Shown: positions 1 through 62,400 of the stretch, in pieces
Layout of the letters: every line of letters starts with the position of its first letter
Position numbering within the stretch: position 1 is the first letter of the stretch
The notes under the pieces: model-generated
Told to the model about the DNA's origin: nothing
The model's input: the letters and a program-made list of their open reading frames with translations, nothing else
The model's database searches: none
Assembly: GCA_002189035.1 (NCBI GenBank)
Contig: NEEC01000034.1
Location: 1 to 64,000 of the forward strand
Origin: Utricularia gibba
Taxonomy: Eukaryota > Plantae > Magnoliophyta
DNA length: 64,000 bases
Reading direction: 5' to 3'
Position numbers and translations under genes: made by a program

Positions 1-344
1 TTTTAACAAATCCGGTGCACGTGTGATTTTTCGGCTGCATCCGAATGGTGATGCGCAATGAAATGACTATGTCGCACATCCTGGTCCACGAAGCACCTCT
101 TCGAAAACATGTAGAGCCTTACTCTTCATAGCACACCATTGGGAAGCTTTATTCGTGCTCCAAGTAATATCATATGGAGTTACGTTTTTCCGATAACTGT
201 GGACATATTAAAAACAACCTCAACGAAAAGTGTCTTCCGTGTCCTTCCTTGGTGGCTGCGTCTAAGAATGTGCTTCTCGTTCTCGACATTGATGCAAATG
301 GGATACACGGCAAAAGAATCAAATAGCCACTAGAGACATGGTGT

Positions 345-455: not shown

Positions 456-576
456 GTCACATGTTACATCATGAATTTCGTGGCATCACTTATCCCAACA
501 CTGTTGTATACTCAGGATATGCGTAAATATTTATTTTTAACAAATCCGGTGCACGTGTGATTTTTCGGCTGCATCC
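456..576 (-). pseudogene. Degenerate 5S rRNA-like segment (plant-type), present once per monomer; first complete copy shown (another at 3657-3777)
   Basis: The minus strand reads GGATGCAGCCGAAAAATCACACGTGCACCGGATTTGTTAAAAATAAATATTTACGCATATCCTGAGTATACAACAGTGTTGGGATAAGTGATGCCACGAAATTCATGATGTAACATGTGAC (121 nt). I compared it by hand with angiosperm 5S recalled from memory (GGATGCGATCATACCAGCACTAATGCACCGGAT...AGTTAAGCGTGC...AGTACTAGGATGGGTGAC...GTGTTGCATCCC). Results: 22/33 ungapped identity at the 5' end, 7/12 at box A, 12/18 over IE/box C with all six mismatches transitions, about 65/120 overall. Helices I-III cannot pair, so this is not a functional rRNA. No database search was run. Confidence 0.62.
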
Positions 577-3200
577 CGAATGGTGATGCGCAATGAAATG
601 ACTATGTCGCACATCCTGGTCCACGAAGCACCTCTTCGAAACATGTAGAGCTTACTCTTCATAGCACACCATTGGGAAGCTTTATTCGTGCTCCAAGTAA
701 TATCATATGGAGTTACGTTTTTCCGATAACTGTGGACATATTAAAAACAACCACAACGAAAAGTGTCTTCCGTGTCCTTCCTTGGTGGCTGCGTCTAAAA
801 TGTGCTTCTCGTTCTCGACATTGATGCAAATGGGATACACGGCAAAGAATCAAATAGCCACTAGAGACATGGTGTATGGGAATGGTGCATCAAGAATCAG
901 AAGTATCATAGCAACTAATTTGAATCAATCAACAGCCAAAACATATGGTGTCAAACTTCATCGGATATGCGATCAAGATGGAAAAAAGTCACATGTTACA
1001 TCATGAATTTCGTGGCATCACTTATCCCAACACTGTTGTATACTCAGGATATGCGTAAATATTTTTTTAACAAATCCGGTGCACGTGTGATTTTTCGGCT
1101 GCATCCCGAATGGTGATGCGCAATGAAATGACTATGTCGCACATCCTGGTCCACGAAGCACCTCTTCGAAAACATGTAGAGCCTTACTCTTCATAGCACA
1201 CCATTGGGAAGCTTTATTCGTGCTCCAAGTAATATCATATGGAGTTACGTTTTTCCGATAACTGTGGACATATTAAAAACAAACCACAACGAAAAGTGTC
1301 TTCCGTGTCCTTCCTTGGTGGCTGCGTCTAAGAATGTGCTTCTCGTTCTCGACATTGATGCAAATGGGATACACGGCAAAAGAATCAAATAGCCACTAGA
1401 GACATGGTGTATGGGAATGGTGCATCAAGAATCAGAAGTATCATAGCAACTAATTGAATCAATCAACAGCCAAAACATATGGTGTCAAACTTCATCGGAT
1501 ATGCGATCAAGATGGAAAAAAGTCACATGTTACATCATGAATTTCGTGGCATCACTTATCCCAACACTGTTGTATACTCAGGATATGCGTAAATATTTAT
1601 TTTTAACAAATCCGGTGCACGTGTGATTTTTCGGCTGCATCCCGAATGGTGATGCGCAATGAAATGACTATGTCGCACATCCTGGTCCACGAAGCACCTC
1701 TTCGAAAACATGTAGAGCCTTACTCTTCATAGCACACCATTGGGAAGCTTTATTCGTGCTCCAAGTAATATCATATGGAGTTACGTTTTTCCGATAACTG
1801 TGGACATATTAAAAACAACCTCAACGAAAAGTGTCTTCCGTGTCCTTCCTTGGTGGCTGCGTCTAAGAATGTGCTTCTCGTTCTCGACATTGATGCAAAT
1901 GGGATACACGGCAAAAGAATCAAATAGCACTAGAGACATGGTGTATGGGAATGGTGCATCAAGAATCAGAAGTATCATAGCAACTAATTGAATCAATCAA
2001 CAGCCAAAACATATGGTGTCAAACTTCATCGGATATGCGATCAAGATGGAAAAAAGTCACATGTTACATCATGAATTTCGTGGCATCACTTATCCAACAC
2101 TGTTGTATACTCAGGATATGCGTAAATATTTATTTTTAACAAATCCGGTGCACGTGTGATTTTTCGGCTGCATCCCGAATGGTGATGCGCAATGAAATGA
2201 CTATGTCGCACATCCTGGTCCACGAAGCACCTCTTCGAAACATGTAGAGCCTTACTCTTCATAGCACACCATTGGGAAGCTTTATTCGTGCTCCAAGTAA
2301 TATCATATGGAGTTACGTTTTCCGATAACTGTGGACATATTAAAAACAACCTCAACGAAAAGTGTCTTCCGTGTCCTTCCTTGGTGGCTGCGTCTAAGAA
2401 TGTGCTTCTCGTTCTCGACATTGATGCAAATGGATACACGGCAAAAGAATCAAATAGCCACTAGAGACATGGTGTATGGGAATGGTGCATCAAGAATCAG
2501 AAGTATCATAGCAACTAATTGAATCAATCAACAGCCAAAACATATGGTGTCAAACTTCATCGGATATGCGATCAAGATGGAAAAAAGTCACATGTTACAT
2601 CATGAATTTCGTGGCATCACTTATCCCAACACTGTTGTATACTCAGGATATGCGTAAATATTTATTTTTAACAAATCCGGTGCACGTGTGATTTTTCGGC
2701 TGCATCCCGAATGGTGATGCGCAATGAAATGACTATGTCGCACATCCTGGTCCACGAAGCACCTCTTCGAAAACATGTAGAGCCTTACTCTTCATAGCAC
2801 ACCATTGGGAAGCTTTATTCGTGCTCCAAGTAATATCATATGGAGTTACGTTTTTCCGATAACTGTGGACATATTAAAAACAACCTCAACGAAAAGTGTC
2901 TTCCGTGTCCTTCCTTGGTGGCTGCGTCTAAGAATGTGCTTCTCGTTCTCGACATTGATGCAAATGGGATACACGGCAAAAGAATCAAATAGCCACTAGA
3001 GACATGGTGTATGGGAATGGTGCATCAAGAATCAGAAGTATCATAGCAACTAATTGAATCAATCAACAGCCAAAACATATGGTGTCAAACTTCATCGGAT
3101 ATGCGATCAAGATGGAAAAAAGTCACATGTTACATCATGAATTTCGTGGCATCACTTATCCCAACACTGTTGTATACTCAGGATATGCGTAAATATTTAT

Positions 3201-21700: not shown

Positions 21701-22744
21701 AGCCACTAGAGACATGGTGTATGGGAATGGTGCATCAAGAATCAGAAGTATCATAGCAACTAATTGAATCAATCAACAGCCAAAACATATGGTGTCAAAC
21801 TTCATCGGATATGCGATCAAGATGGAAAAAAGTCACATGTTACATCATGAATTTCGTGGCATCACTTATCCCAACACTGTTGTATACTCAGGATATGCGT
21901 AAATATTTATTTTTAACAAATCCGGTGCACGTGTGATTTTTCGGCTGCATCCCGAATGGTGATGCGCAATGAAATGACTATGTCGCACATCCTGGTCCAC
22001 GAAGCACCTCTTCGAAACATGTAGAGCCTTACTCTTCATAGCACACCATTGGGAAGCTTTATTCGTGCTCCAAGTAATATCATATGGAGTTACGTTTTTC
22101 CGATAACTGTGGACATATTAAAAACAACCTCAACGAAAAGTGTCTTCCGTGTCCTTCCTTGGTGGCTGCGTCTAAGAATGTGCTTCTCGTTCTCGACATT
22201 GATGCAAATGGGATCACACTAGAGACAATGGGAATGGTGCATCAAGAATCAGAAGTATCATAGCAACTAATTGAATCAATCAACAGCCAAAACACATGGT
22301 GTCCCATGGGCATCACTGCTCAGCGTAAATCAAATACGTGTGAAAATTGTGTCAATGACCGTGGGTGTCAAACTTCATCGGATATGCGATCAAGATGGAA
22401 AAAAGTCACATGTTACATCATGAATTTCGTGGCATCACTTATCCCAACACTGTTGTATACTCAGGATATGCGTAAATATTTATTTTTAACAAATCCGGTG
22501 CACGTGTGATTTTTCGGCTGCATCCCGAATGGTGATGCGCAATGAAATGACTATGTCGCACATCCTGGTCCACGAAGCACCTCTTCGAAAACATGTAGAG
22601 CCTTACTCTTCATAGCACACCATTGGGAAGCTTTATTCGTGCTCCAAGTAATATCATATGGAGTTACGTTTTCCGATAACTGTGGACATATTAAAAACAA
22701 CCTCAACGAAAAGTGTCTTCCGTGTCCTTCCTTGGTGGCTGCGT

Positions 22745-22930
22745 CTTCTCGTTCTCGACATTGATGCAAATGGGATACACGGCAAAAGAATCAAATAGCC
22801 ACTAGAGACATGGTGTATGGGAATGGTGCATCAAGAATCAGAAGTATCATAGCAACTAATTGAATCAATCAACAGCCAAAACATATGGTGTCAAACTTCA
22901 TCGGATATGCGATCAAGCGTGAAAAAAGCA
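22745..22930 (+). repeat. Truncated 186-bp partial monomer inside the array
   Basis: CTTCTCGTTCTCGAC restarts at 22931, only 186 bp after 22745, via a garbled junction (TCAAGCGTGAAAAAAGCA). Confidence 0.8.
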
Positions 22931-25900
22931 CTTCTCGTTCTCGACATTGATGCAAATGGGATACACGGCAAAAGAATCAAATAGCCACTAGAGACATGGT
23001 GTATGGGAATGGTGCATCAAGAATCAGAAGTATCATAGCAACTAATTGAATCAATCAACAGCCAAAACATATGGTGTCAAACTTCATCGGATATGCGATC
23101 AAGATGGAAAAAAGTCACATGTTACATCATGAATTTCGTGGCATCACTTATCCCAACACTGTTGTATACTCAGGATATGCGTAAATATTTATTTTTAACA
23201 AATCCGGTGCACGTGTGATTTTTCGGCTGCATCCCGAATGGTGATGCGCAATGAAATGACTATGTCGCACATCCTGGTCCACGAAGCACCTCTTCGAAAA
23301 CATGTAGAGCCTTACTCTTCATAGCACACCATTGGGAAGCTTTATTCGTGCTCCAAGTAATATCATATGGAGTTACGTTTTTCCGATAACTGTGGACATA
23401 TTAAAAACAACCTCAACGAAAAGTGTCTTCCGTGTCCTTCCTTGGTGGCTGCGTCTAAGAATGTGCTTCTCGTTCTCGACATTGATGCAAATGGGATACA
23501 CGGCAAAAGAATCAAATAGCCACTAGAGACATGGTGTATGGGAATGGTGCATCAAGAATCAGAAGTATCATAGCAACTAATTGAATCAATCAACAGCCAA
23601 AACATATGGTGTCAAACTTCATCGGATATGCGATCAAGATGGAAAAAAGTCACATGTTACATCATGAATTTCGTGGCATCACTTATCCCAACACTGTTGT
23701 ATACTCAGGATATGCGTAAATATTTATTTTTAACAAATCCGGTGCACGTGTGATTTTTCGGCTGCATCCCGAATGGTGATGCGCAATGAAATGACTATGT
23801 CGCACATCCTGGTCCACGAAGCACCTCTTCGAAACATGTAGAGCCTTACTCTTCATAGCACACCATTGGGAAGCTTTATTCGTGCTCCAAGTAATATCAT
23901 ATGGAGTTACGTTTTTCCGATAACTGTGGACATATTAAAAACAACCTCAACGAAAAGTGTCTTCCGTGTCCTTCCTTGGTGGCTGCGTCTAAGAATGTGC
24001 TTCTCGTTCTCGACATTGATGCAAATGGGATACACGGCAAAAGAATCAAATAGCCACTAGAGACATGGTGTATGGGAATGGTGCATCAAGAATCAGAAGT
24101 ATCATAGCAACTAATTGAATCAATCAACAGCCAAAACATATGGTGTCAAACTTCATCGGATATGCGATCAAGATGGAAAAAAGTCACATGTTACATCATG
24201 AATTTCGTGGCATCACTTATCCCAACACTGTTGTATACTCAGGATATGCGTAAATATTTATTTTTAACAAATCCGGTGCACGTGTGATTTTTCGGCTGCA
24301 TCCCGAATGGTGATGCGCAATGAAATGACTATGTCGCACATCCTGGTCCACGAAGCACCTCTTCGAAAACATGTAGAGCCTTACTCTTCATAGCACACCA
24401 TTGGGAAGCTTTATTCGTGCTCCAAGTAATATCATATGGAGTTACGTTTTTCCGATAACTGTGGACATATTAAAAACAACCTCAACGAAAAGTGTCTTCC
24501 GTGTCCTTCCTTGGTGGCTGCGTCTAAGAATGTGCTTCTCGTTCTCGACATTGATGCAAATGGGATACACGGCAAAAGAATCAAATAGCCACTAGAGACA
24601 TGGTGTATGGGAATGGTGCATCAAGAATCAGAAGTATCATAGCAACTAATTGAATCAATCAACAGCCAAAACATATGGTGTCAAACTTCATCGGATATGC
24701 GATCAAGATGGAAAAAAGTCACATGTTACATCATGAATTTCGTGGCATCACTTATCCCAACACTGTTGTATACTCAGGATATGCGTAAATATTTATTTTT
24801 AACAAATCCGGTGCACGTGTGATTTTTCGGCTGCATCCCGAATGGTGATGCGCAATGAAATGACTATGTCGCACATCCTGGTCCACGAAGCACCTCTTCG
24901 AAAACATGTAGAGCCTTACTCTTCATAGCACACCATTGGGAAGCTTTATTCGTGCTCCAAGTAATATCATATGGAGTTACGTTTTTCCGATAACTGTGGA
25001 CATATTAAAAACAACCTCAACGAAAAGTGTCTTCCGTGTCCTTCCTTGGTGGCTGCGTCTAAGAATGTGCTTCTCGTTCTCGACATTGATGCAAATGGGA
25101 TACACGGCAAAAGAATCAAATAGCCACTAGAGACATGGTGTATGGGAATGGTGCATCAAGAATCAGAAGTATCATAGCAACTAATTGAATCAATCAACAG
25201 CCAAAACATATGGTGTCAAACTTCATCGGATATGCGATCAAGATGGAAAAAAGTCACATGTTACATCATGAATTTCGTGGCATCACTTATCCCAACACTG
25301 TTGTATACTCAGGATATGCGTAAATATTTATTTTTAACAAATCCGGTGCACGTGTGATTTTTCGGCTGCATCCCGAATGGTGATGCGCAATGAAATGACT
25401 ATGTCGCACATCCTGGTCCACGAAGCACCTCTTCGAAAACATGTAGAGCCTTACTCTTCATAGCACACCATTGGGAAGCTTTATTCGTGCTCCAAGTAAT
25501 ATCATATGGAGTTACGTTTTTCCGATAACTGTGGACATATTAAAAACAACCTCAACGAAAAGTGTCTTCCGTGTCCTTCCTTGGTGGCTGCGTCTAAGAA
25601 TGTGCTTCTCGTTCTCGACATTGATGCAAATGGGATACACGGCAAAAGAATCAAATAGCCACTAGAGACATGGTGTATGGGAATGGTGCATCAAGAATCA
25701 GAAGTATCATAGCAACTAATTGAATCAATCAACAGCCAAAACATATGGTGTCAAACTTCATCGGATATGCGATCAAGATGGAAAAAAGTCACATGTTACA
25801 TCATGAATTTCGTGGCATCACTTATCCCAACACTGTTGTATACTCAGGATATGCGTAAATATTTATTTTTAACAAATCCGGTGCACGTGTGATTTTTCGG

Positions 25901-31900: not shown

Positions 31901-34900
31901 GTCGCACATCCTGGTCCACGAAGCACCTCTTCGAAACATGTAGAGCCTTACTCTTCATAGCACACCATTGGGAAGCTTTATTCGTGCTCCAAGTAATATC
32001 ATATGGAGTTACGTTTTTCCGATAACTGTGGACATATTAAAAACAACCTCAACGAAAAGTGTCTTCCGTGTCCTTCCTTGGTGGCTGCGTCTAAGAATGT
32101 GCTTCTCGTTCTCGACATTGATGCAAATGGGATACACGGCAAAAGAATCAAATAGCCACTAGAGACATGGTGTATGGGAATGGTGCATCAAGAATCAGAA
32201 GTATCATAGCAACTAATTGAATCAATCAACAGCCAAAACATATGGTGTCAAACTTCATCGGATATGCGATCAAGATGGAAAAAAGTCACATGTTACATCA
32301 TGAATTTCGTGGCATCACTTATCCCAACACTGTTGTATACTCAGGATATGCGTAAATATTTATTTTTAACAAATCCGGTGCACGTGTGATTTTTCGGCTG
32401 CATCCCGAATGGTGATGCGCAATGAAATGACTATGTCGCACATCCTGGTCCACGAAGCACCTCTTCGAAAACATGTAGAGCCTTACTCTTCATAGCACAC
32501 CATTGGGAAGCTTTATTCGTGCTCCAAGTAATATCATATGGAGTTACGTTTTCCGATAACTGTGGACATATTAAAAACAACCTCAACGAAAAGTGTCTTC
32601 CGTGTCCTTCCTTGGTGGCTGCGTCTAAGAATGTGCTTCTCGTTCTCGACATTGATGCAAATGGGATACACGGCAAAAGAATCAAATAGCCACTAGAGAC
32701 ATGGTGTATGGGAATGGTGCATCAAGAATCAGAAGTATCATAGCAACTAATTGAATCAATCAACAGCCAAAACATATGGTGTCAAACTTCATCGGATATG
32801 CGATCAAGATGGAAAAAAGTCACATGTTACATCATGAATTTCGTGGCATCACTTATCCCAACACTGTTGTATACTCAGGATATGCGTAAATATTTATTTT
32901 TAACAAATCCGGTGCACGTGTGATTTTTCGGCTGCATCCCGAATGGTGATGCGCAATGAAATGACTATGTCGCACATCCTGGTCCACGAAGCACCTCTTC
33001 GAAACACCTTACTGTAAGCTTTCTTCTAGCACACCATTGGGAAGCTGTTCCAAGTAATATCATATGGAGTTACGTTTTTCCGATAACTGTGGACATATTA
33101 AAAACAACCTCAACGAAAAGTGTCTTCCGTGTCCTTCCTTGGTGGCTGCGTCTAAGAATGTGCTTCTCGTTCTCGACATTGATGCAAATGGGATACACGG
33201 CAAAAGAATCAAATAGCCACTAGAGACATGGTGTATGGGAATGGTGCATCAAGAATCAGAAGTATCATAGCAACTAATTGAATCAATCAACAGCCAAAAC
33301 ATATGGTGTCAAACTTCATCGGATATGCGATCAAGATGGAAAAAAGTCACATGTTACATCATGAATTTCGTGGCATCACTTATCCCAACACTGTTGTATA
33401 CTCAGGATATGCGTAAATATTTATTTTTAACAAATCCGGTGCACGTGTGATTTTTCGGCTGCATCCCGAATGGTGATGCGCAATGAAATGACTATGTCGC
33501 ACATCCTGGTCCACGAAGCACCTCTTCGAAAACATGTAGAGCCTTACTCTTCATAGCACACCATTGGGAAGCTTTATTCGTGCTCCAAGTAATATCATAT
33601 GGAGTTACGTTTTTCCGATAACTGTGGACATATTAAAAACAACCTCAACGAAAAGTGTCTTCCGTGTCCTTCCTTGGTGGCTGCGTCTAAGAATGTGCTT
33701 CTCGTTCTCGACATTGATGCAAATGGGATACACGGCAAAAGAATCAAATAGCCACTAGAGACATGGTGTATGGGAATGGTGCATCAAGAATCAGAAGTAT
33801 CATAGCAACTAATTGAATCAATCAACAGCCAAAACATATGGTGTCAAACTTCATCGGATATGCGATCAAGATGGAAAAAAGTCACATGTTACATCATGAA
33901 TTTCGTGGCATCACTTATCCCAACACTGTTGTATACTCAGGATATGCGTAAATATTTATTTTTAACAAATCCGGTGCACGTGTGATTTTTCGGCTGCATC
34001 CCGAATGGTGATGCGCAATGAAATGACTATGTCGCACATCCTGGTCCACGAAGCACCTCTTCGAAAACATGTAGAGCCTTACTCTTCATAGCACACCATT
34101 GGGAAGCTTTATTCGTGCTCCAAGTAATATCATATGGAGTTACGTTTTTCCGATAACTGTGGACATATTAAAAACAACCTCAACGAAAAGTGTCTTCCGT
34201 GTCCTTCCTTGGTGGCTGCGTCTAAGAATGTGCTTCTCGTTCTCGACATTGATGCAAATGGGATACACGGCAAAAGAATCAAATAGCCACTAGAGACATG
34301 GTGTATGGGAATGGTGCATCAAGAATCAGAAGTATCATAGCAACTAATTGAATCAATCAACAGCCAAAACATATGGTGTCAAACTTCATCGGATATGCGA
34401 TCAAGATGGAAAAAAGTCACATGTTACATCATGAATTTCGTGGCATCACTTATCCCAACACTGTTGTATACTCAGGATATGCGTAAATATTTATTTTTAA
34501 CAAATCCGGTGCACGTGTGATTTTTCGGCTGCATCCCGAATGGTGATGCGCAATGAAATGACTATGTCGCACATCCTGGTCCACGAAGCACCTCTTCGGT
34601 AGAGCCTTACTCTTCATAGCACACCATTGGGAAGCTTTATTCGTGCTCCAAGCATCAAGACATCAGAAAAGTAAGAATGTGCATATGCAACTCAAATTAG
34701 AGACATCATCAAGAATCAGAAGTATCAGCAACTAAAATCAATCATGGTGTCAAACTTCATCGGATATGCGATCAAGATGGAAAAAAGTCACATGTTACAT
34801 CATGAATTTCGTGGCATCACTTATCCCAACACTGTTGTATACTCAGGATATGCGTAAATATTTATTTTTAACAAATCCGGTGCACGTGTGATTTTTCGGC

Positions 34901-37900
34901 TGCATCCCGAATGGTGATGCGCAATGAAATGACTATGTCGCACATCCTGGTCCACGAAGCACCTCTTCGAAAACATGTAGAGCCTTACTCTTCATAGCAC
35001 ACCATTGGGAAGCTTTATTCGTGCTCCAAGTAATATCATATGGAGTTACGTTTTTCCGATAACTGTGGACATATTAAAAACAACCTCAACGAAAAGTGTC
35101 TTCCGTGTCCTTCCTTGGTGGCTGCGTCTAAGAATGTGCTTCTCGTTCTCGACATTGATGCAAATGGGATACACGGCAAAAGAATCAAATAGCCACTAGA
35201 GACATGGTGTATGGGAATGGTGCATCAAGAATCAGAAGTATCATAGCAACTAATTGAATCAATCAACAGCCAAAACATATGGTGTCAAACTTCATCGGAT
35301 ATGCGATCAAGATGGAAAAAAGTCACATGTTACATCATGAATTTCGTGGCATCACTTATCCCAACACTGTTGTATACTCAGGATATGCGTAAATATTTAT
35401 TTTTAACAAATCCGGTGCACGTGTGATTTTTCGGCTGCATCCCGAATGGTGATGCGCAATGAAATGACTATGTCGCACATCCTGGTCCACGAAGCACCTC
35501 TTCGAAACATGTAGAGCCTTACTCTTCATAGCACACCATTGGGAAGCTTTATTCGTGCTCCAAGTAATATCATATGGAGTTACGTTTTTCCGATAACTGT
35601 GGACATATTAAAAACAACCTCAACGAAAAGTGTCTTCCGTGTCCTTCCTTGGTGGCTGCGTCTAAGAATGTGCTTCTCGTTCTCGACATTGATGCAAATG
35701 GGATACACGGCAAAAGAATCAAATAGCCACTAGAGACATGGTGTATGGGAATGGTGCATCAAGAATCAGAAGTATCATAGCAACTAATTGAATCAATCAA
35801 CAGCCAAAACATATGGTGTCAAACTTCATCGGATATGCGATCAAGATGGAAAAAAGTCACATGTTACATCATGAATTTCGTGGCATCACTTATCCCAACA
35901 CTGTTGTATACTCAGGATATGCGTAAATATTTATTTTTAACAAATCCGGTGCACGTGTGATTTTTCGGCTGCATCCCGAATGGTGATGCGCAATGAAATG
36001 ACTATGTCGCACATCCTGGTCCACGAAGCACCTCTTCGAAAACATGTAGAGCCTTACTCTTCATAGCACACCATTGGGAAGCTTTATTCGTGCTCCAAGT
36101 AATATCATATGGAGTTACGTTTTTCCGATAACTGTGGACATATTAAAAACAACCTCAACGAAAAGTGTCTTCCGTGTCCTTCCTTGGTGGCTGCGTCTAA
36201 GAATGTGCTTCTCGTTCTCGACATTGATGCAAATGGGATACACGGCAAAAGAATCAAATAGCCACTAGAGACATGGTGTATGGGAATGGTGCATCAAGAA
36301 TCAGAAGTATCATAGCAACTAATTGAATCAATCAACAGCCAAAACATATGGTGTCAAACTTCATCGGATATGCGATCAAGATGGAAAAAAGTCACATGTT
36401 ACATCATGAATTTCGTGGCATCACTTATCCCAACACTGTTGTATACTCAGGATATGCGTAAATATTTATTTTTAACAAATCCGGTGCACGTGTGATTTTT
36501 CGGCTGCATCCCGAATGGTGATGCGCAATGAAATGACTATGTCGCACATCCTGGTCCACGAAGCACCTCTTCGAAAACATGTAGAGCCTTACTCTTCATA
36601 GCACACCATTGGGAAGCTTTATTCGTGCTCCAAGTAATATCATATGGAGTTACGTTTTCCGATAACTGTGGACATATTAAAAACAACCTCAACGAAAAGT
36701 GTCTTCCGTGTCCTTCCTTGGTGGCTGCGTCTAAGTGCTTCTCGTTCTCGATTGATGCAAATACACGGCAAAAGAATCAAATAGCCACTAGAGACATGGT
36801 GTATGGGAATGGTGCATCAAGAATCAGAAGTATCATAGCAACTAATTGAATCAATCAACAGCCAAAACATATGGTGTCAAACTTCATCGGATATGCGATC
36901 AAGATGGAAAAAAGTCACATGTTACATCATGAATACTCAGGATATGCGTAAATATTTATTTTTAACAAATCCGGTGCACGTGTGATTTTTCTCAAGCACG
37001 TAGAGCCTTACTCTTCATAGCACACCATTGTTTATTCGTGCTCCAAGTAATATCATATGGAGTTACGTTCCGATAACTGTGGACATATGAAAAGTGGTGT
37101 CCTTCCTTGGTGGCTGCGTCTAAGAATGTGCTTCTCGTTCTCGACATTGATGCAAATGGGATACACGGCAAAAGAATCAAATAGCCACTAGAGACATGGT
37201 GTATGGGAATGGTGCATCAAGAATCAGAAGTATCATAGCAACTAATTGAATCAATCAACAGCCAAAACATATGGTGTCAAACTTCATCGGATATGCGATC
37301 AAGATGGAAAAAAGTCACATGTTACATCATGAATTTCGTGGCATCACTTATCCCAACACTGTTGTATACTCAGGATATGCGTAAATATTTATTTTTAACA
37401 AATCCGGTGCACGTGTGATTTTTCGGCTGCATCCCGAATGGTGATGCGCAATGAAATGACTATGTCGCACATCCTGGTCCACGAAGCACCTCTTCGAAAA
37501 CATGTAGAGCCTTACTCTTCATAGCACACCATTGGGAAGCTTTATTCGTGCTCCAAGTAATATCATATGGAGTTACGTTTTTCCGATAACTGTGGACATA
37601 TTAAAAACAACCTCAACGAAAAGTGTCTTCCGTGTCCTTCCTTGGTGGCTGCGTCTAAGAATGTGCTTCTCGTTCTCGACATTGATGCAAATGGGATACA
37701 CGGCAAAAGAATCAAATAGCCACTAGAGACATGGTGTATGGGAATGGTGCATCAAGAATCAGAAGTATCATAGCAACTAATTGAATCAATCAACAGCCAA
37801 AACATATGGTGTCAAACTTCATCGGATATGCGATCAAGATGGAAAAAAGTCACATGTTACATCATGAATTTCGTGGCATCACTTATCCCAACACTGTTGT

Positions 37901-40900
37901 ATACTCAGGATATGCGTAAATATTTATTTTTAACAAATCCGGTGCACGTGTGATTTTTCGGCTGCATCCCGAATGGTGATGCGCAATGAAATGACTATGT
38001 CGCACATCCTGGTCCACGAAGCACCTCTTCGAAACATGTAGAGCCTTACTCTTCATAGCACACCATTGGGAAGCTTTATTCGTGCTCCAAGTAATATCAT
38101 ATGGAGTTACGTTTTTCCGATAACTGTGGACATATTAAAAACAACCTCAACGAAAAGTGTCTTCCGTGTCCTTCCTTGAAGCTTCTCGTGCTCCAACTCA
38201 TATGGATGGTTGCGATAACGTGGACATATTAAAAACAACCTCAACGAAAAGTGTCTTCCGTGTCCTTCCTTGGTGGCTGCGTCTAAGAATGTGCTTCTCG
38301 TTCTCGACATTGATGCAAATGGGATACACGGCAAAAGAATCAAATAGCCACTAGAGACATGGTGTATGGGAATGGTGCATCAAGAATCAGAAGTATCATA
38401 GCAACTAATTGAATCAATCAACAGCCAAAACATATGGTGTCAAACTTCATCGGATATGCGATCAAGATGGAAAAAAGTCACATGTTACATCATGAATTTC
38501 GTGGCATCACTTATCCCAACACTGTTGTATACTCAGGATATGCGTAAATATTTATTTTTAACAAATCCGGTGCACGTGTGATTTTTCGGCTGCATCCCGA
38601 ATGGTGATGCGCAATGAAATGACTATGTCGCACATCCTGGTCCACGAAGCACCTCTTCGAAAACATGTAGAGCCTTACTCTTCATAGCACACCATTGGGA
38701 AGCTTTATTCGTGCTCCAAGTAATATCATATGGAGTTACGTTTTTCCGATAACTGTGGACATATTAAAAACAACCTCAACGAAAAGTGTCTTCCGTGTCC
38801 TTCCTTGGTGGCTGCGTCTAAGAATGTGCTTCTCGTTCTCGACATTGATGCAAATGGGATACACGGCAAAAGAATCAAATAGCCACTAGAGACATGGTGT
38901 ATGGGAATGGTGCATCAAGAATCAGAAGTATCATAGCAACTAATTGAATCAATCAACAGCCAAAACATATGGTGTCAAACTTCATCGGATATGCGATCAA
39001 GATGGAAAAAAGTCACATGTTACATCATGAATTTCGTGGCATCACTTATCCCAACACTGTTGTATACTCAGGATATGCGTAAATATTTATTTTTAACAAA
39101 TCCGGTGCACGTGTGATTTTTCGGCTGCATCCCGAATGGTGATGCGCAATGAAATGACTATGTCGCACATCCTGGTCCACGAAGCACCTCTTCGAAAACA
39201 TGTAGAGCCTTACTCTTCATAGCACACCATTGGGAAGCTTTATTCGTGCTCCAAGTAATATCATATGGAGTTACGTTTTTCCGATAACTGTGGACATATT
39301 AAAAACAACCTCAACGAAAAGTGTCTTCCGTGTCCTTCCTTGGTGGCTGCGTCTAAGAATGTGCTTCTCGTTCTCGACATTGATGCAAATGGGATACACG
39401 GCAAAAGAATCAAATAGCCACTAGAGACATGGTGTATGGGAATGGTGCATCAAGAATCAGAAGTATCATAGCAACTAATTGAATCAATCAACAGCCAAAA
39501 CATATGGTGTCAAACTTCATCGGATATGCGATCAAGATGGAAAAAAGTCACATGTTACATCATGAATTTCGTGGCATCACTTATCCCAACACTGTTGTAT
39601 ACTCAGGATATGCGTAAATATTTATTTTTAACAAATCCGGTGCACGTGTGATTTTTCGGCTGCATCCCGAATGGTGATGCGCAATGAAATGACTATGTCG
39701 CACATCCTGGTCCACGAAGCACCTCTTCGAAAACATGTAGAGCCTTACTCTTCATAGCACACCATTGGGAAGCTTTATTCGTGCTCCAAGTAATATCATA
39801 TGGAGTTACGTTTTTCCGATAACTGTGGACATATTAAAAACAACCTCAACGAAAAGTGTCTTCCGTGTCCTTCCTTGGTGGCTGCGTCTAAGAATGTGCT
39901 TCTCGTTCTCGACATTGATGCAAATGGGATACACGGCAAAAGAATCAAATAGCCACTAGAGACATGGTGTATGGGAATGGTGCATCAAGAATCAGAAGTA
40001 TCATAGCAACTAATTGAATCAATCAACAGCCAAAACATATGGTGTCAAACTTCATCGGATATGCGATCAAGATGGAAAAAAGTCACATGTTACATCATGA
40101 ATTTCGTGGCATCACTTATCCCAACACTGTTGTATACTCAGGATATGCGTAAATATTTATTTTTAACAAATCCGGTGCACGTGTGATTTTTCGGCTGCAT
40201 CCCGAATGGTGATGCGCAATGAAATGACTATGTCGCACATCCTGGTCCACGAAGCACCTCTTCGAAACATGTAGAGCCTTACTCTTCATAGCACACCATT
40301 GGGAAGCTTTATTCGTGCTCCAAGTAATATCATATGGAGTTACGTTTTTCCGATAACTGTGGACATATTAAAAACAACCTCAACGAAAAGTGTCTTCCGT
40401 GTCCTTCCTTGGTGGCTGCGTCTAAGAATGTGCTTCTCGTTCTCGACATTGATGCAAATGGGATACACGGCAAAAGAATCAAATAGCCACTAGAGACATG
40501 GTGTATGGGAATGGTGCATCAAGAATCAGAAGTATCATAGCAACTAATTGAATCAATCAACAGCCAAAACATATGGTGTCAAACTTCATCGGATATGCGA
40601 TCAAGATGGAAAAAAGTCACATGTTACATCATGAATTTCGTGGCATCACTTATCCCAACACTGTTGTATACTCAGGATATGCGTAAATATTTATTTTTAA
40701 CAAATCCGGTGCACGTGTGATTTTTCGGCTGCATCCCGAATGGTGATGCGCAATGAAATGACTATGTCGCACATCCTGGTCCACGAAGCACCTCTTCGAA
40801 AACATGTAGAGCCTTACTCTTCATAGCACACCATTGGGAAGCTTTATTCGTGCTCCAAGTAATATCATATGGAGTTACGTTTTTCCGATAACTGTGGACA

Positions 40901-50400: not shown

Positions 50401-53400
50401 CGAAAAGTGTCTTCCGTGTCCTTCCTTGGTGGCTGCGTCTAAGAATGTGCTTCTCGTTCTCGACATTGATGCAAATGGGATACACGGCAAAAGAATCAAA
50501 TAGCCACTAGAGACATGGTGTATGGGAATGGTGCATCAAGAATCAGAAGTATCATAGCAACTAATTGAATCAATCAACAGCCAAAACATATGGTGTCAAA
50601 CTTCATCGGATATGCGATCAAGATGGAAAAAAGTCACATGTTACATCATGAATTTCGTGGCATCACTTATCCCAACACTGTTGTATACTCAGGATATGCG
50701 TAAATATTTATTTTTAACAAATCCGGTGCACGTGTGATTTTTCGGCTGCATCCCGAATGGTGATGCGCAATGAAATGACTATGTCGCACATCCTGGTCCA
50801 CGAAGCACCTCTTCGAAAACATGTAGAGCCTTACTCTTCATAGCACACCATTGGGAAGCTTTATTCGTGCTCCAAGTAATATCATATGGAGTTACGTTTT
50901 TCCGATAACTGTGGACATATTAAAAACAACCTCAACGAAAAGTGTCTTCCGTGTCCTTCCTTGGTGGCTGCGTCTAAGAATGTCTTCTCGATCAAGATGG
51001 AAAAAAGTCACATGTTACATCATGAATTTCGTGGCATCACTTATCCCAACACTGTTGTATACTCAGGATATGCGTAAATATTTATTTTTAACAAATCCGG
51101 TGCACGTGTGATTTTTCGGCTGCATCCCGAATGGTGATGCGCAATGAAATGACTATGTCGCACATCCTGGTCCACGAAGCACCTCTTCGGCACACCATTG
51201 GGAAGCTTTATTCGTGCTCCAAGTAATATCATATGGAGTTACGTTTTTCCGATAACTGTGGACATATTAAAAACAACCTCAACGAAAAGTGTCTTCCGTG
51301 TCAAGAATCAAATAGCCACTAGAGACATGGTGTATGGGAATGGTGCATCAAGAATCAGAAGTATCATAGCAACTAATTGAATCAATCAACAGCCAAAACA
51401 TATGGTGTCAAACTTCATCGGATATGCGATCAAGATGGAAAAAAGTCACATGTTACATCATGAATTTCGTGGCATCACTTATCCCAACACTGTTGTATAC
51501 TCAGGATATGCGTAAATATTTATTTTTAACAAATCCGGTGCACGTGTGATTTTTCGGCTGCATCCCGAATGGTGATGCGCAATGAAATGACTATGTCGCA
51601 CATCCTGGTCCACGAAGCACCTCTTCGAAAACATGTAGAGCCTTACTCTTCATAGCACACCATTGGGAAGCTTTATTCGTGCTCCAAGTAATATCATATG
51701 GAGTTACGTTTTTCCGATAACTGTGGACATATTAAAAACAACCTCAACGAAAAGTGTCTTCCGTGTCCTTCCTTGGTGGCTGCGTTAAGAATGTGCTTCT
51801 CGTTCTCGACATTGATGCAAATGGGATACACGGCAAAAGAATCAAATAGCCACTAGAGACATGGTGTATGGGAATGGTGCATCAAGAATCAGAAGTATCA
51901 TAGCAACTAATTGAATCAATCAACAGCCAAAACATATGGTGTCAAACTTCATCGGATATGCGATCAAGATGGAAAAAAGTCACATGTTACATCATGAATT
52001 TCGTGGCATCACTTATCCCAACACTGTTGTATACTCAGGATATGCGTAAATATTTATTTTTAACAAATCCGGTGCACGTGTGATTTTTCGGCTGCATCCC
52101 GAATGGTGATGCGCAATGAAATGACTATGTCGCACATCCTGGTCCACGAAGCACCTCTTCGAAAACATGTAGAGCCTTACTCTTCATAGCACACCATTGG
52201 GAAGCTTTATTCGTGCTCCAAGTAATATCATATGGAGTTACGTTTTTCCGATAACTGTGGACATATTAAAAACAACCTCAACGAAAAGTGTCTTCCGTGT
52301 CCTTCCTTGGTGGCTGCGTCTAAGAATGTGCTTCTCGTTCTCGACATTGATGCAAATGGGATACACGGCAAAAGAATCAAATAGCCACTAGAGACATGGT
52401 GTATGGGAATGGTGCATCAAGAATCAGAAGTATCATAGCAACTAATTGAATCAATCAACAGCCAAAACATATGGTGTCAAACTTCATCGGATATGCGATC
52501 AAGATGGAAAAAAGTCACATGTTACATCATGAATTTCGTGGCATCACTTATCCCAACACTGTTGTATACTCAGGATATGCGTAAATATTTATTTTTAACA
52601 AATCCGGTGCACGTGTGATTTTTCGGCTGCATCCCGAATGGTGATGCGCAATGAAATGACTATGTCGCACATCCTGGTCCACGAAGCACCTCTTCGAAAA
52701 CATGTAGAGCCTTACTCTTCATAGCACACCATTGGGAAGCTTTATTCGTGCTCCAAGTAATATCATATGGAGTTACGTTTTTCCGATAACTGTGGACATA
52801 TTAAAAACAACCTCAACGAAAAGTGTCTTCCGTGTCCTTCCTTGGTGGCTGCGTCTAAGAATGTGCTTCTCGTTCTCGACATTGATGCAAATGGGATACA
52901 CGGCAAAAGAATCAAATAGCCACTAGAGACATGGTGTATGGGAATGGTGCATCAAGAATCAGAAGTATCATAGCAACTAATTGAATCAATCAACAGCCAA
53001 AACATATGGTGTCAAACTTCATCGGATATGCGATCAAGATGGAAAAAAGTCACATGTTACATCATGAATTTCGTGGCATCACTTATCCCAACACTGTTGT
53101 ATACTCAGGATATGCGTAAATATTTATTTTTAACAAATCCGGTGCACGTGTGATTTTTCGGCTGCATCCCGAATGGTGATGCGCAATGAAATGACTATGT
53201 CGCACATCCTGGTCCACGAAGCACCTCTTCGAAAACATGTAGAGCCTTACTCTTCATAGCACACCATTGGGAAGCTTTATTCGTGCTCCAAGTAATATCA
53301 TATGGAGTTACGTTTTTCCGATAACTGTGGACATATTAAAAACAACCTCAACGAAAAGTGTCTTCCGTGTCCTTCCTTGGTGGCTGCGTCTAAGAATGTG

Positions 53401-56400
53401 CTTCTCGTTCTCGACATTGATGCAAATGGGATACACGGCAAAAGAATCAAATAGCCACTAGAGACATGGTGTATGGGAATGGTGCATCAAGAATCAGAAG
53501 TATCATAGCAACTAATTGAATCAATCAACAGCCAAAACATATGGTGTCAAACTTCATCGGATATGCGATCAAGATGGAAAAAAGTCACATGTTACATCAT
53601 GAATTTCGTGGCATCACTTATCCCAACACTGTTGTATACTCAGGATATGCGTAAATATTTATTTTTAACAAATCCGGTGCACGTGTGATTTTTCGGCTGC
53701 ATCCCGAATGGTGATGCGCAATGAAATGACTATGTCGCACATCCTGGTCCACGAAGCACCTCTTCGAAACATGTAGAGCCTTACTCTTCATAGCACACCA
53801 TTGGGAAGCTTTATTCGTGCTCCAAGTAATATCATATGGAGTTACGTTTTTCCGATAACTGTGGACATATTAAAAACAACCTCAACGAAAAGTGTCTTCC
53901 GTGTCCTTCCTTGGTGGCTGCGTCTAAGAATGTGCTTCTCGTTCTCGACATTGATGCAAATGGGATACACGGCAAAAGAATCAAATAGCCACTAGAGACA
54001 TGGTGTATGGGAATGGTGCATCAAGAATCAGAAGTATCATAGCAACTAATTGAATCAATCAACAGCCAAAACATATGGTGTCAAACTTCATCGGATATGC
54101 GATCAAGATGGAAAAAAGTCACATGTTACATCATGAATTTCGTGGCATCACTTATCCCAACACTGTTGTATACTCAGGATATGCGTAAATATTTATTTTT
54201 AACAAATCCGGTGCACGTGTGATTTTTCGGCTGCATCCCGAATGGTGATGCGCAATGAAATGACTATGTCGCACATCCTGGTCCACGAAGCACCTCTTCG
54301 AAAACATGTAGAGCCTTACTCTTCATAGCACACCATTGGGAAGCTTTATTCGTGCTCCAAGTAATATCATATGGAGTTACGTTTTTCCGATAACTGTGGA
54401 CATATTAAAAACAACCTCAACGAAAAGTGTCTTCGTGTCCTTCCTTGGTGGCTGCGTCTAAGAATGTGCTTCTCGTTCTCGACATTGATGCAAATGGGAT
54501 ACACGGCAAAAGAATCAAATAGCCACTAGAGACATGGTGTATGGGAATGGTGCATCAAGAATCAGAAGTATCATAGCAACTAATTGAATCAATCAACAGC
54601 CAAAACATATGGTGTCAAACTTCATCGGATATGCGATCAAGATGGAAAAAAGTCACATGTTACATCATGAATTTCGTGGCATCACTTATCCCACTGTTGT
54701 ATACTCACGTGTGCACGTGTGATTTTTCGGCTGCATCCCGAATGGTGATGCGCAATGAAATGACTATGTCGCACATCCTGGTCCACGAAGCACCTCTTCG
54801 ATGTAGAGCCTTACTCTTCATAGCACACCATTGGGAAGCAAGTATCGGATAACTGTGGACATAGTGTCACTTCTCGTTCTCGACATTGATGCTACACGGC
54901 AAAAGAATCAAATAGCCACTAGAGACATGGTGTATGGGAATGGTGCATCAAGAATCAGAAGTATCATAGCAACTAATTGAATCAATCAACAGCCAAAACA
55001 TATGGTGTCAAACTTCATCGGATATGCGATCAAGATGGAAAAAAGTCACATGTTACATCATGAATTTCGTGGCATCACTTATCCCAACACTGTTGTATAC
55101 TCAGGATATGCGTAAATATTTATTTTTAACAAATCCGGTGCACGTGTGATTTTTCGGCTGCATCCCGAATGGTGATGCGCAATGAAATGACTATGTCGCA
55201 CATCCTGGTCCACGAAGCACCTCTTCGAAAACATGTAGAGCCTTACTCTTCATAGCACACCATTGGGAAGCTTTATTCGTGCTCCAAGTAATATCATATG
55301 GAGTTACGTTTTTCCGATAACTGTGGACATATTAAAAACAACCTCAACGAAAAGTGTCTTCCGTGTCCTTCCTTGGTGGCTGCGTTAAAATGTGCTTCTC
55401 GTTCTCGACATTGATGCAAATGGGATACACGGCAAAAGAATCAAATAGCCACTAGAGACATGGTGTATGGGAATGGTGCATCAAGAATCAGAAGTATCAT
55501 AGCAACTAATTGAATCAATCAACAGCCAAAACATATGGTGTCAAACTTCATCGGATATGCGATCAAGATGGAAAAAAGTCACATGTTACATCATGAATTT
55601 CGTGGCATCACTTATCCCAACACTGTTGTATACTCAGGATATGCGTAAATATTTATTTTTAACAAATCCGGTGCACGTGTGATTTTTCGGCTGCATCCCG
55701 AATGGTGATGCGCAATGAAATGACTATGTCGCACATCCTGGTCCACGAAGCACCTCTTCGAAAACATGTAGAGCCTTACTCTTCATAGCACACCATTGGG
55801 AAGCTTTATTCGTGCTCCAAGTAATATCATATGGAGTTACGTTTTTCCGATAACTGTGGACATATTAAAAACAACCTCAACGAAAAGTGTCTTCCGTGTC
55901 CTTCCTTGGTGGCTGCGTCTAAGAATGTGCTTCTCGTTCTCGACATTGATGCAAATGGGATACACGGCAAAAGAATCAAATAGCCACTAGAGACATGGTG
56001 TATGGGAATGGTGCATCAAGAATCAGAAGTATCATAGCAACTAATTGAATCAATCAACAGCCAAAACATATGGTGTCAAACTTCATCGGATATGCGATCA
56101 AGATGGAAAAAAGTCACATGTTACATCATGAATTTCGTGGCATCACTTATCCCAACACTGTTGTATACTCAGGATATGCGTAAATATTTATTTTTAACAA
56201 ATCCGGTGCACGTGTGATTTTTCGGCTGCATCCCGAATGGTGATGCGCAATGAAATGACTATGTCGCACATCCTGGTCCACGAAGCACCTCTTCGAAAAC
56301 ATGTAGAGCCTTACTCTTCATAGCACACCATTGGGAAGCTTTATTCGTGCTCCAAGTAATATCATATGGAGTTACGTTTTTCCGATAACTGTGGACATAT

Positions 56401-59400: not shown

Positions 59401-62400
59401 CCGAATGGTGATGCGCAATGAAATGACTATGTCGCACATCCTGGTCCACGAAGCACCTCTTCGAAAACATGTAGAGCCTTACTCTTCATAGCACACCATT
59501 GGGAAGCTTTATTCGTGCTCCAAGTAATATCATATGGAGTTACGTTTTTCCGATAACTGTGGACATATTAAAAACAACCTCAACGAAAAGTGTCTTCCGT
59601 GTCCTTCCTTGGTGGCTGCGTCTAAGAATGTGCTTCTCGTTCTCGACATTGATGCAAATGGGATACACGGCAAAAGAATCAAATAGCCACTAGAGACATG
59701 GTGTATGGGAATGGTGCATCAAGAATCAGAAGTATCATAGCAACTAATTGAATCAATCAACAGCCAAAACATATGGTGTCAAACTTCATCGGATATGCGA
59801 TCAAGATGGAAAAAAGTCACATGTTACATCATGAATTTCGTGGCATCACTTATCCCAACACTGTTGTATACTCAGGATATGCGTAAATATTTATTTTTAA
59901 CAAATCCGGTGCACGTGTGATTTTTCGGCTGCATCCCGAATGGTGATGCGCAATGAAATGACTATGTCGCACATCCTGGTCCACGAAGCACCTCTTCGAA
60001 AACATGTAGAGCCTTACTCTTCATAGCACACCATTGGGAAGCTTTATTCGTGCTCCAAGTAATATCATATGGAGTTACGTTTTTCCGATAACTGTGGACA
60101 TATTAAAAACAACCTCAACGAAAAGTGTCTTCCGTGTCCTTCCTTGGTGGCTGCGTCTAAGAATGTGCTTCTCGTTCTCGACATTGATGCAAATGGGATA
60201 CACGGCAAAAGAATCAAATAGCCACTAGAGACATGGTGTATGGGAATGGTGCATCAAGAATCAGAAGTATCATAGCAACTAATTGAATCAATCAACAGCC
60301 AAAACATATGGTGTCAAACTTCATCGGATATGCGATCAAGATGGAAAAAAGTCACATGTTACATCATGAATTTCGTGGCATCACTTATCCCAACACTGTT
60401 GTATACTCAGGATATGCGTAAATATTTATTTTTAACAAATCCGGTGCACGTGTGATTTTTCGGCTGCATCCCGAATGGTGATGCGCAATGAAATGACTAT
60501 GTCGCACATCCTGGTCCACGAAGCACCTCTTCGAAAACATGTAGAGCCTTACTCTTCATAGCACACCATTGGGAAGCTTTATTCGTGCTCCAAGTAATAT
60601 CATATGGAGTTACGTTTTTCCGATAACTGTGGACATATTAAAAACAACCTCAACGAAAAGTGTCTTCCGTGTCCTTCCTTGGTGGCTGCGTCTAAGAATG
60701 TGCTTCTCGTTCTCGACATTGATGCAAATGGGATACACGGCAAAAGAATCAAATAGCCACTAGAGACATGGTGTATGGGAATGGTGCATCAAGAATCAGA
60801 AGTATCATAGCAACTAATTGAATCAATCAACAGCCAAAACATATGGTGTCAAACTTCATCGATATGCGATCAAGATGGAAAAAAGTCACATGTTACATCA
60901 TGAATTTCGTGGCATCACTTATCCCAACACTGTTGTATACTCAGGATATGCGTAAATATTTATTTTTAACAAATCCGGTGCACGTGTGATTTTTCGGCTG
61001 CAAATGGTGATGCGCAATGAAATGACTATGTCGCACATCCTGGTCCACGAAGCACCTCTTCGATGTAGAGCCTTACTCTTCATAGCACACCATTGGGAAG
61101 CTTTATTCGTGCTCCAAGTAATATCATATGGAGTTACATAACTGTGGAGAAAAGTGATGCAAATGGGATACACGGCAAAAGAATCAAATAGCCACTAGAG
61201 ACATGGTGTATGGGAATGGTGCATCAAGAATCAGAAGTATCATAGCAACTAATTGAATCAATCAACAGCCAAAACATATGGTGTCAAACTTCATCGGATA
61301 TGCGATCAAGATGGAAAAAAGTCACATGTTACATCATGAATTTCGTGGCATCACTTATCCCAACACTGTTGTATACTCAGGATATGCGTAAATATTTATT
61401 TTTAACAAATCCGGTGCACGTGTGATTTTTCGGCTGCATCCCGAATGGTGATGCGCAATGAAATGACTATGTCGCACATCCTGGTCCACGAAGCACCTCT
61501 TCGAAAACATGTAGAGCCTTACTCTTCATAGCACACCATTGGGAAGCTTTATTCGTGCTCCAAGTAATATCATATGGAGTTACGTTTTTCCGATAACTGT
61601 GGACATATTAAAAACAACCTCAACGAAAAGTGTCTTCCGTGTCCTTCCTTGGTGGCTGCGTCTAAGAATGTGCTTCTCGTTCTCGACATTGATGCAAATG
61701 GGATACACGGCAAAAGAATCAAATAGCCACTAGAGACATGGTGTATGGGAATGGTGCATCAAGAATCAGAAGTATCATAGCAACTAATTGAATCAATCAA
61801 CAGCCAAAACATATGGTGTCAAACTTCATCGGATATGCGATCAAGATGGAAAAAAGTCACATGTTACATCATGAATTTCGTGGCATCACTTATCCCAACA
61901 CTGTTGTATACTCAGGATATGCGTAAATATTTATTTTTAACAAATCCGGTGCACGTGTGATTTTTCGGCTGCATCCCGAATGGTGATGCGCAATGAAATG
62001 ACTATGTCGCACATCCTGGTCCACGAAGCACCTCTTCGAAAACATGTAGAGCCTTACTCTTCATAGCACACCATTGGGAAGCTTTATTCGTGCTCCAAGT
62101 AATATCATATGGAGTTACGTTTTTCCGATAACTGTGGACATATTAAAAACAACCTCAACGAAAAGTGTCTTCCGTGTCCTTCCTTGGTGGCTGCGTCTAA
62201 GAATGTGCTTCTCGTTCTCGACATTGATGCAAATGGGATACACGGCAAAAGAATCAAATAGCCACTAGAGACATGGTGTATGGGAATGGTGCATCAAGAA
62301 TCAGAAGTATCATAGCAACTAATTGAATCAATCAACAGCCAAAACATATGGTGTCAAACTTCATCGGATATGCGATCAAGATGGAAAAAAGTCACATGTT

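Follow-up and report, generated by a model that had tools for sequence, protein, structure and literature searches.

Most plant satellites, to our knowledge, have no known origin. The stretch of DNA analysed here (the window, 64,000 nt) is a single head-to-tail satellite array of about 120 monomers, all in the same orientation, and it raises the question of what its monomer descends from. A preliminary description of the locus had pointed to a 121-nt minus-strand segment resembling a 5S rRNA gene, and had read the whole monomer as an ancient 5S rDNA unit that had decayed.

The array and the 5S-like segment

An anchor word occurred 120 times in the window, on one strand only, and the distance between successive occurrences was mostly 535 (69 times), 534 (22 times) or 533 nt (6 times). 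The consensus derived from the 103 regular monomers was 535 bp long, and the monomers were on average 99.8% identical to it. In a BLASTN comparison with the consensus 63,835 of the 64,000 bases were covered (99.7%), with zero minus-strand matches. The GC content was flat along the window at 41%. Neither internal repeats or subrepeats within the monomer nor a higher-order repeat structure across the array were found; only two homopolymer-length variants recurred.

These two variants, at columns 100 and 181, were the sole recurrent differences among the 103 regular monomers. Both are 1-base length changes, one of an A-run (23 monomers) and one of a T-run (7 monomers), and they may reflect homopolymer errors of long-read sequencing instead of true variation. 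Fifteen monomers had odd lengths (371-927 bp), with the affected sites lying at 21915-23200, 34499, 36474-37932, 47653, 50716-51090, 54201 and 60968. One monomer contains a 186-bp internal duplication (22745-23114), the copies of which are 98% identical, and short stretches at 22304-22363, 34653-34706, 54840-54869 and 61138-61154 do not correspond to the consensus. The odd lengths and the non-consensus stretches look like local deletions, duplications and junction filler within the array.

The features of the window that are relevant to the origin of the monomer are the following (coordinates, strand, feature):

1-64000, minus (the strand of the 5S-like segment): satellite array; about 120 monomers, each 533-536 bp long except for 15 length variants
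43-576, minus: repeat unit read as a probable 5S rDNA unit, consisting of the gene-like segment, the T-run and about 410 bp of former spacer
456-576, minus: probable 5S pseudogene, spanning the full length of the rRNA gene in decayed form; identity to the plant 5S consensus about 52%
571-576, minus: GGATGC, probable remnant of the 5′ end of the gene; GGGTGC in related species
544-553, minus: TGCACCGGAT, exact match to 5S positions 24-33
517-528, minus: box A-like remnant ATTTACGCATAT, agreeing with 9 of the 12 positions of RGTTAAGYRHGY
485-495, minus: box C-like remnant GGATAAGTGAT, agreeing with 9 of the 11 positions of GGATGGGTGAC
450-455, minus: T6 run occupying the position of the Pol III terminator; it begins 3 nt past the last aligned gene position

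Direct reading of the minus strand from 576 to 456 bore out the elements listed in the preliminary description: the 121-nt segment starts with GGATGC, carries TGCACCGGAT at positions 24-33 and GGATAAGTGAT at 82-92, ends with GAC and is followed by TTTTTT (A6 of the plus strand, 450-455). At least 115 of the approximately 120 monomers carry this segment unchanged. The definition of the box A motif (RGTTAAGYRHGY) was taken from the literature (PMC7215508). The functional internal control region (ICR) of 5S genes, which comprises box A, IE and box C, is not intact here: box A is matched at 9 of 12 and box C at 9 of 11 positions, and the distance between the two is 20 nt instead of 18.

Standard searches and whole-gene alignment

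As references we used plant-type 5S genes fetched from metagenome contigs by a conserved 24-mer, which yielded 84 good genes. Rfam was run on eight of these loci, and it gave their 5S genes 100 bits or more for RF00001. The sequence TGCACCGGAT was present at positions 24-33 in 75 of the 84 genes and GGATGGGTGAC at positions 81-91 in 58, in agreement with what the preliminary description had stated of plant 5S genes. It had also given GGATGC as the plant 5S start; this hexamer does occur as a start, but in a minority of the genes (3/84), the commoner ones being GGGTGC (34/84) and AGGTGC (27/84). The reference genes, like the segment, have T-runs directly downstream, and the 535-bp unit falls within the gene-to-gene spacing of the fetched plant 5S arrays (approximately 324-968 bp). 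One of the metagenome contigs (L004) carries a tRNA gene (194-265, minus strand, 67 bits) between two 5S genes about 324 bp apart, and is a linked 5S-tRNA unit from a plant-type organism.

Standard homology searches did not detect the 5S likeness of the window's monomer. Rfam at the gathering threshold found no RF00001 match in the whole window. At E ≤ 10, searches of 1.1 kb and of 146 nt around the segment revealed no 5S match, only snoRNA-like ones with E ≥ 5. The latter are weak C/D-box matches at 893-1010 on the minus strand (snoMe28S-G3255 with 21.9 bits, snoR113 and sR11; E = 5-9), lie far under the gathering scores, and were treated as chance. A custom covariance model built from 30 plant 5S genes and run with the filters off found nothing at 456-576 on the minus strand, and only trivial hairpins elsewhere (E ≥ 1.2). 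The nhmmer program with the --max option gave no match on the window's monomer, and the Smith-Waterman local alignment score was not above those of shuffled sequences (153 of 1000 reached it). BLASTN with a word size of 7 found nothing between the monomer and 120 foreign contigs containing about 150 5S copies with their spacers; the suggestion that BLASTN could miss the resemblance was thus correct. The lack of BLASTN matches to foreign 5S spacers is expected, as spacers evolve fast; the host's own 5S rDNA lies outside the window. A repeated 28-nt BLASTN match in the spacers of one contig (L084) was rejected, being in the wrong orientation and having E > 1.

Infernal and nhmmer searches at 456-576 had been put forward in the preliminary description as the check on its reading, and taken literally their outcome speaks against a 5S origin. 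Simulation, however, indicated that such failure is to be expected. When the real 5S consensus was decayed in silico with a transition bias and few indels, 0.8-1.0 attempted substitutions per site resulted in 52-56% identity, and nhmmer reached 5 bits with the simulated copies of this identity in only 18-48% of the trials. The semi-global alignment scores of the simulated copies ranged from -12 to 0 with plain scoring and from 13 to 23 with transition-aware scoring, and the values observed for the window copy (see below) lie within these ranges. Simulated decay thus reproduces the identity, the scores and the failure of nhmmer.

Global alignment of the segment to the plant 5S consensus gave 63-64 matches in 121-123 columns (52%), slightly below the approximately 54% given earlier. 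The mismatches comprised 28 transitions and 26 transversions (transition share 0.52), and 32 transitions were counted in a transition-aware alignment; the earlier count of 31 transitions to 18 transversions was too generous. In the best alignments of shuffled sequences the transition share was 0.34 ± 0.06, and 0-7 of 1000 reached 0.52. Twenty of the 28 transitions were of the G/C to A/T type.

The significance of the whole-gene resemblance was assessed in a semi-global test, in which the complete 5S consensus was aligned anywhere in the circular monomer, on both strands, and the score was compared with those of 1000-2000 dinucleotide shuffles. The results obtained with three scoring schemes were as follows:

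+1/-1, gap -3/-1: z = 3.0; 9 of 1000 shuffles reached the real score
+1/-1, gap -6/-1: z = 3.9; real score reached by 4 target shuffles and by 6 query shuffles, out of 2000 each
transition-aware (a scheme picked after the transition excess had already been noted): z = 5.5-7.5; real score reached by no target shuffle and by 0-5 query shuffles, out of 2000 each

As the segment was singled out from very many windows, a look-elsewhere discount applies to these significance values. Extending the query by T6 raised z from 3.0 to 4.5. Scoring with a heavy mismatch penalty and cheap gap extension gave no signal over the shuffles. Reversed-sequence controls fell inside the null distribution. Chunks of natural plant DNA other than 5S reached at best -11 (plain) and 12 (transition-aware); the corresponding values were -10 and 19 for the window copy, and 5 and 27.75 for the variant found in related species (see below).

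The two parts of the 5S gene were also aligned separately. Positions 1-45 and 46-119 mapped independently to adjacent and correctly ordered positions of the unit (0-45 and 44-119, respectively). The best supported part was gene positions 1-33, with z = 4.2-4.3 for the window copy and 5.1-5.2 for the relatives' variant. The ICR half alone was not significant in the window copy (z = -0.6 to 2.3); the ICR part rose above the shuffles only in the relatives' variant (z = 4.2-5.6). Upstream promoter motifs in register with the gene, searched for with a position-weight matrix, were not significant (rank 166-333 of 1070). The sequence CATA at -30 to -27 is an anecdote only. In summary, the 5S resemblance exceeds chance under semi-global alignment and is invisible to local-alignment and covariance tools.

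The satellite in related species

The satellite was also present in sequencing runs labelled as several other organisms. Contigs from four such runs were compared with two monomers of the window (539-1608). The copies in these runs were approximately 89-98% alike to those of the window, and in one species they were present at high depth. A relatives' variant of the monomer was rebuilt by introducing into the window copy the differences listed for the best-supported variant, from a table that leaves up to 5 substitutions unlisted.

The rebuilt variant is more similar to 5S than the window copy. It starts with GGGTGC, the commonest plant 5S start, owing to a T>C change at equivalent position 1104 (runs X10 and X13), it is without the two 1-nt insertions of the window copy, and its box A-like and box C-like elements are 18 nt apart (20 nt in the window copy). 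At positions 24-33 the related species have TGCACTGGAT, a CpG-to-TpG change. Aligned with plant 5S, the variant has 67 matches out of 119, with only two 1-nt gaps. Its plain score was +5 against a null of -22 ± 3 (z about 9), and its transition-aware score was 27.75 against 1.4 ± 2.6. With this variant nhmmer did find a collinear match, covering model positions 2-101 with E = 0.0021; among 2000 shuffled monomers of an earlier shuffle set, 7 reached the same nhmmer score. Random mutation sets of the same size, when applied to the window copy, changed the score by -8.5 on average, and none of 3000 attained the observed gain of 17. A chance likeness should regress in unselected relatives; that the likeness strengthens instead counts against chance.

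The species of run X13 contains at least two subfamilies of the satellite. One, with a depth of about 300, carries two 1-nt deletions within its 5S-like part. The second, represented by a 531-bp circularly joined contig with a depth of about 72, differs from the window by about 11% and does not have these deletions, a caveat to the better fit that they bring.

Between species the 5S-like segment differs by about 13%, compared to 3-6% for adjoining sequence on the same contig. Being no better conserved than the rest of the monomer, the segment behaves as a pseudogene. The 5S remnant is a fossil and not a working gene: the covariance model does not match it, and both boxes, A and C, are damaged along with the distance between them. 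Continued engagement of the monomers by RNA polymerase III or by factors of the TFIIIA type might keep the T-run, the box C-like motif and the 10-mer TGCACCGGAT, and would yield transcripts of the satellite or contribute to heterochromatin formation. We regard it as very unlikely: the 10-mer is broken in related species, divergence of the segment is no slower than that of the remaining monomer, and among the runs found with the satellite no RNA run was shown to hold it.

Origin of the monomer

The 535-bp monomer probably descends from a 5S rDNA repeat unit, made up of the 120-bp gene, a T-run terminator and about 410 bp of spacer. The origin proposed in the preliminary description is supported by the semi-global z values, the excess of transitions, the adjacent mapping of the gene halves and the copies of the relatives. 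Three other explanations were weighed against it. One is that the monomer is an unrelated AT-rich satellite in which a 6-mer, a 10-mer, a 9/11 match and a T-run happen to lie in register. The shared 10-mer alone is expected in about one of 9 monomers (1070 positions × 110 words / 4^10), and identity outside the three blocks is about 41%, which is near random for a gapped alignment. Chance would also agree with the lack of matches from Rfam, the covariance model, nhmmer and BLASTN, with the scoring schemes that gave no signal, with the non-significant upstream motifs, and with the segment having been noticed among very many windows read. It does not account well for z values of 3-4 with plain and 5.5-7.5 with transition-aware scoring, for a transition excess that is independent of the match score, or for gene halves that map adjacently. 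Moreover, the unselected copies of the relatives move towards 5S (equalled by 0 of 3000 mutation sets; nhmmer E = 0.002). We therefore consider chance an unlikely explanation.

Another conceivable donor is a tandem array of Cassandra TRIM elements, with a unit consisting of LTR and internal domain, from which a 5S-like piece could have come instead of directly from a 5S rDNA array. Cassandra LTRs contain a module resembling 5S, in which boxes A and C and a terminator are present, and tandem arrays of these elements mimic 5S rDNA spacing (PMC7215508); a unit of about 535 bp would suit LTR plus internal domain. In the Cassandra motif comparison 9 of 12 and 10 of 13 positions matched, at a spacing of 20 nt here and 18 nt in the relatives, a feature that true 5S genes share and that does not tell the two origins apart. 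Yet none of 81 Cassandra families carries a whole 5S gene; what they contain of it is limited to the ICR module and short flanks, the core being about 70 bp long (PMC10853983), whereas the best supported part of the present segment is gene positions 1-33, including the 5′ end. That both halves of the gene are found adjacent to each other likewise argues against a Cassandra origin. The primer binding site (PBS) TGGTATCAGAGC was not found: the best match within 5-220 nt past box C was 7/12, equal to the shuffle expectation, although at such decay the PBS could have been erased. None of the fetched metagenome loci satisfied a Cassandra query. In favour of a Cassandra donor, one purine tract of 9 nt (AAGGAAGGA) is present, about 205 nt ahead of the beginning of the 5S-like segment. 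Reported Cassandra arrays have at most 12 units, versus more than 120 here. On balance a Cassandra donor seems improbable. It is still harder to see the monomer as a decayed fragment of a Pong/Harbinger ORF1 with a Myb-like domain, whose likeness to 5S would be incidental. One monomer variant does have a 124-codon stop-free stretch on the minus strand, but Pfam searches (E ≤ 10) with the ten longest stop-free translations gave no transposase or Myb match, searches of 5.8 billion proteins yielded no candidate, and the reading frame is not kept across units (535 = 3 × 178 + 1). We regard this explanation as highly improbable. No coding remnant was found in the monomer by Pfam or the large protein searches, and no transposon protein matched the monomer better than 5S does; a better match to an unrelated element would, by the preliminary description, have spoken against its reading.

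If the monomer does descend from a 5S rDNA unit, the order of events and the mode of amplification may be pictured as follows. An old 5S array, or a block copied from one, would have fallen out of step with the working 5S genes. With its function lost, it would have accumulated mostly G/C-to-A/T transitions, which brought the gene part down to about half identity, while the tandem organisation and the unit length were kept and the array spread. Homogenisation, by unequal exchange or gene conversion, would be still going on, and would explain why the copies are 99.8% alike within the genome and about 10% different between species. The Kimura two-parameter distance calculated from the alignment counts is approximately 0.65-0.75 substitutions per site, a rough figure that is biased by alignment optimisation and by repeat-specific mutation rates. 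The decay probably dates back tens of millions of years and so is much more ancient than the split between species that differ by about 10%.

In the whole monomer the CpG observed/expected ratio is 0.94; TpG (1.43) and CpA (1.35) are enriched and TpA (0.67) is low. As CpG is not depleted, methylation-driven decay of the monomer is not demonstrated, and is only a possibility.

The satellite probably belongs to a known class, the 5S rDNA-derived satellites, which had been cited in the preliminary description with PcP190 of frogs and 5SHindIII of Hoplias as examples; the class is well established, and also includes a satellite of the Plantago lagopus B chromosome (PMC12692304, PMC11675491). What is unusual in the present family is the degree of decay and the retention of the full rDNA-unit length. 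We did not find this satellite described in the literature; it may be described under another name. According to a review, no 5S-derived SINEs are known in plants (PMC10946416).

PcP190 (Vittorazzi et al. 2011; PMC11675491, PMC4201667) similarly consists of a 5S-derived region of about 120 bp and a variable region, and, like the present satellite, it is old and common to many species. Its unit, of about 190 bp, has a 5S-like region that is highly conserved and easily recognised; the plant satellite described here has a 535-bp unit and about 52% identity. In 5SHindIII of Hoplias malabaricus, as recounted in PMC12692304 (Martins et al. 2006), a 5S rDNA unit likewise turned into a separate amplified satellite; that satellite is centromeric and, by the same account, has an obvious likeness to the 5S gene and spacer, whereas the gene is nearly unrecognisable here. 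The B-chromosome satellite of Plantago lagopus (Kumke et al. 2016, as cited in PMC12692304; PMC6410184) is another plant satellite that arose from amplified 5S rDNA. It is portrayed in these sources as recent, clearly 5S-like and tied to the B chromosome; the present family is ancient and shared by several species with about 90% identity. Satellites of Solanaceae described in PMC10946416 (Jo et al. 2009) offer a parallel in that rDNA escaped its array and became an independent satellite, but their source, as given there, is the 35S intergenic spacer and not the 5S unit. Cassandra TRIM arrays (Kalendar et al. 2008, 2020; PMC7215508; Maiwald et al. 2024, PMC10853983) resemble the present array in having one 5S-like module per unit, with boxes A and C and a T-run. 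They differ from it in containing only the ICR module, followed by the PBS TGGTATCAGAGC, and in comprising, in reported arrays, up to about 12 units; the array in the window has the 5′ part of the gene, no detectable PBS and more than 120 units.

The locus provides a worked case in which a major, uniform satellite can be traced, with the probability discussed above, to a 5S rDNA unit through a link that escapes BLAST, nhmmer and Infernal. It suggests that a tandem family can retain its unit length and the register of the gene long after the sequence has drifted to about half identity. The combination used to recover the origin, transition-aware whole-gene alignment with shuffle controls and with the copies of relatives, may be applicable to other orphan satellites.
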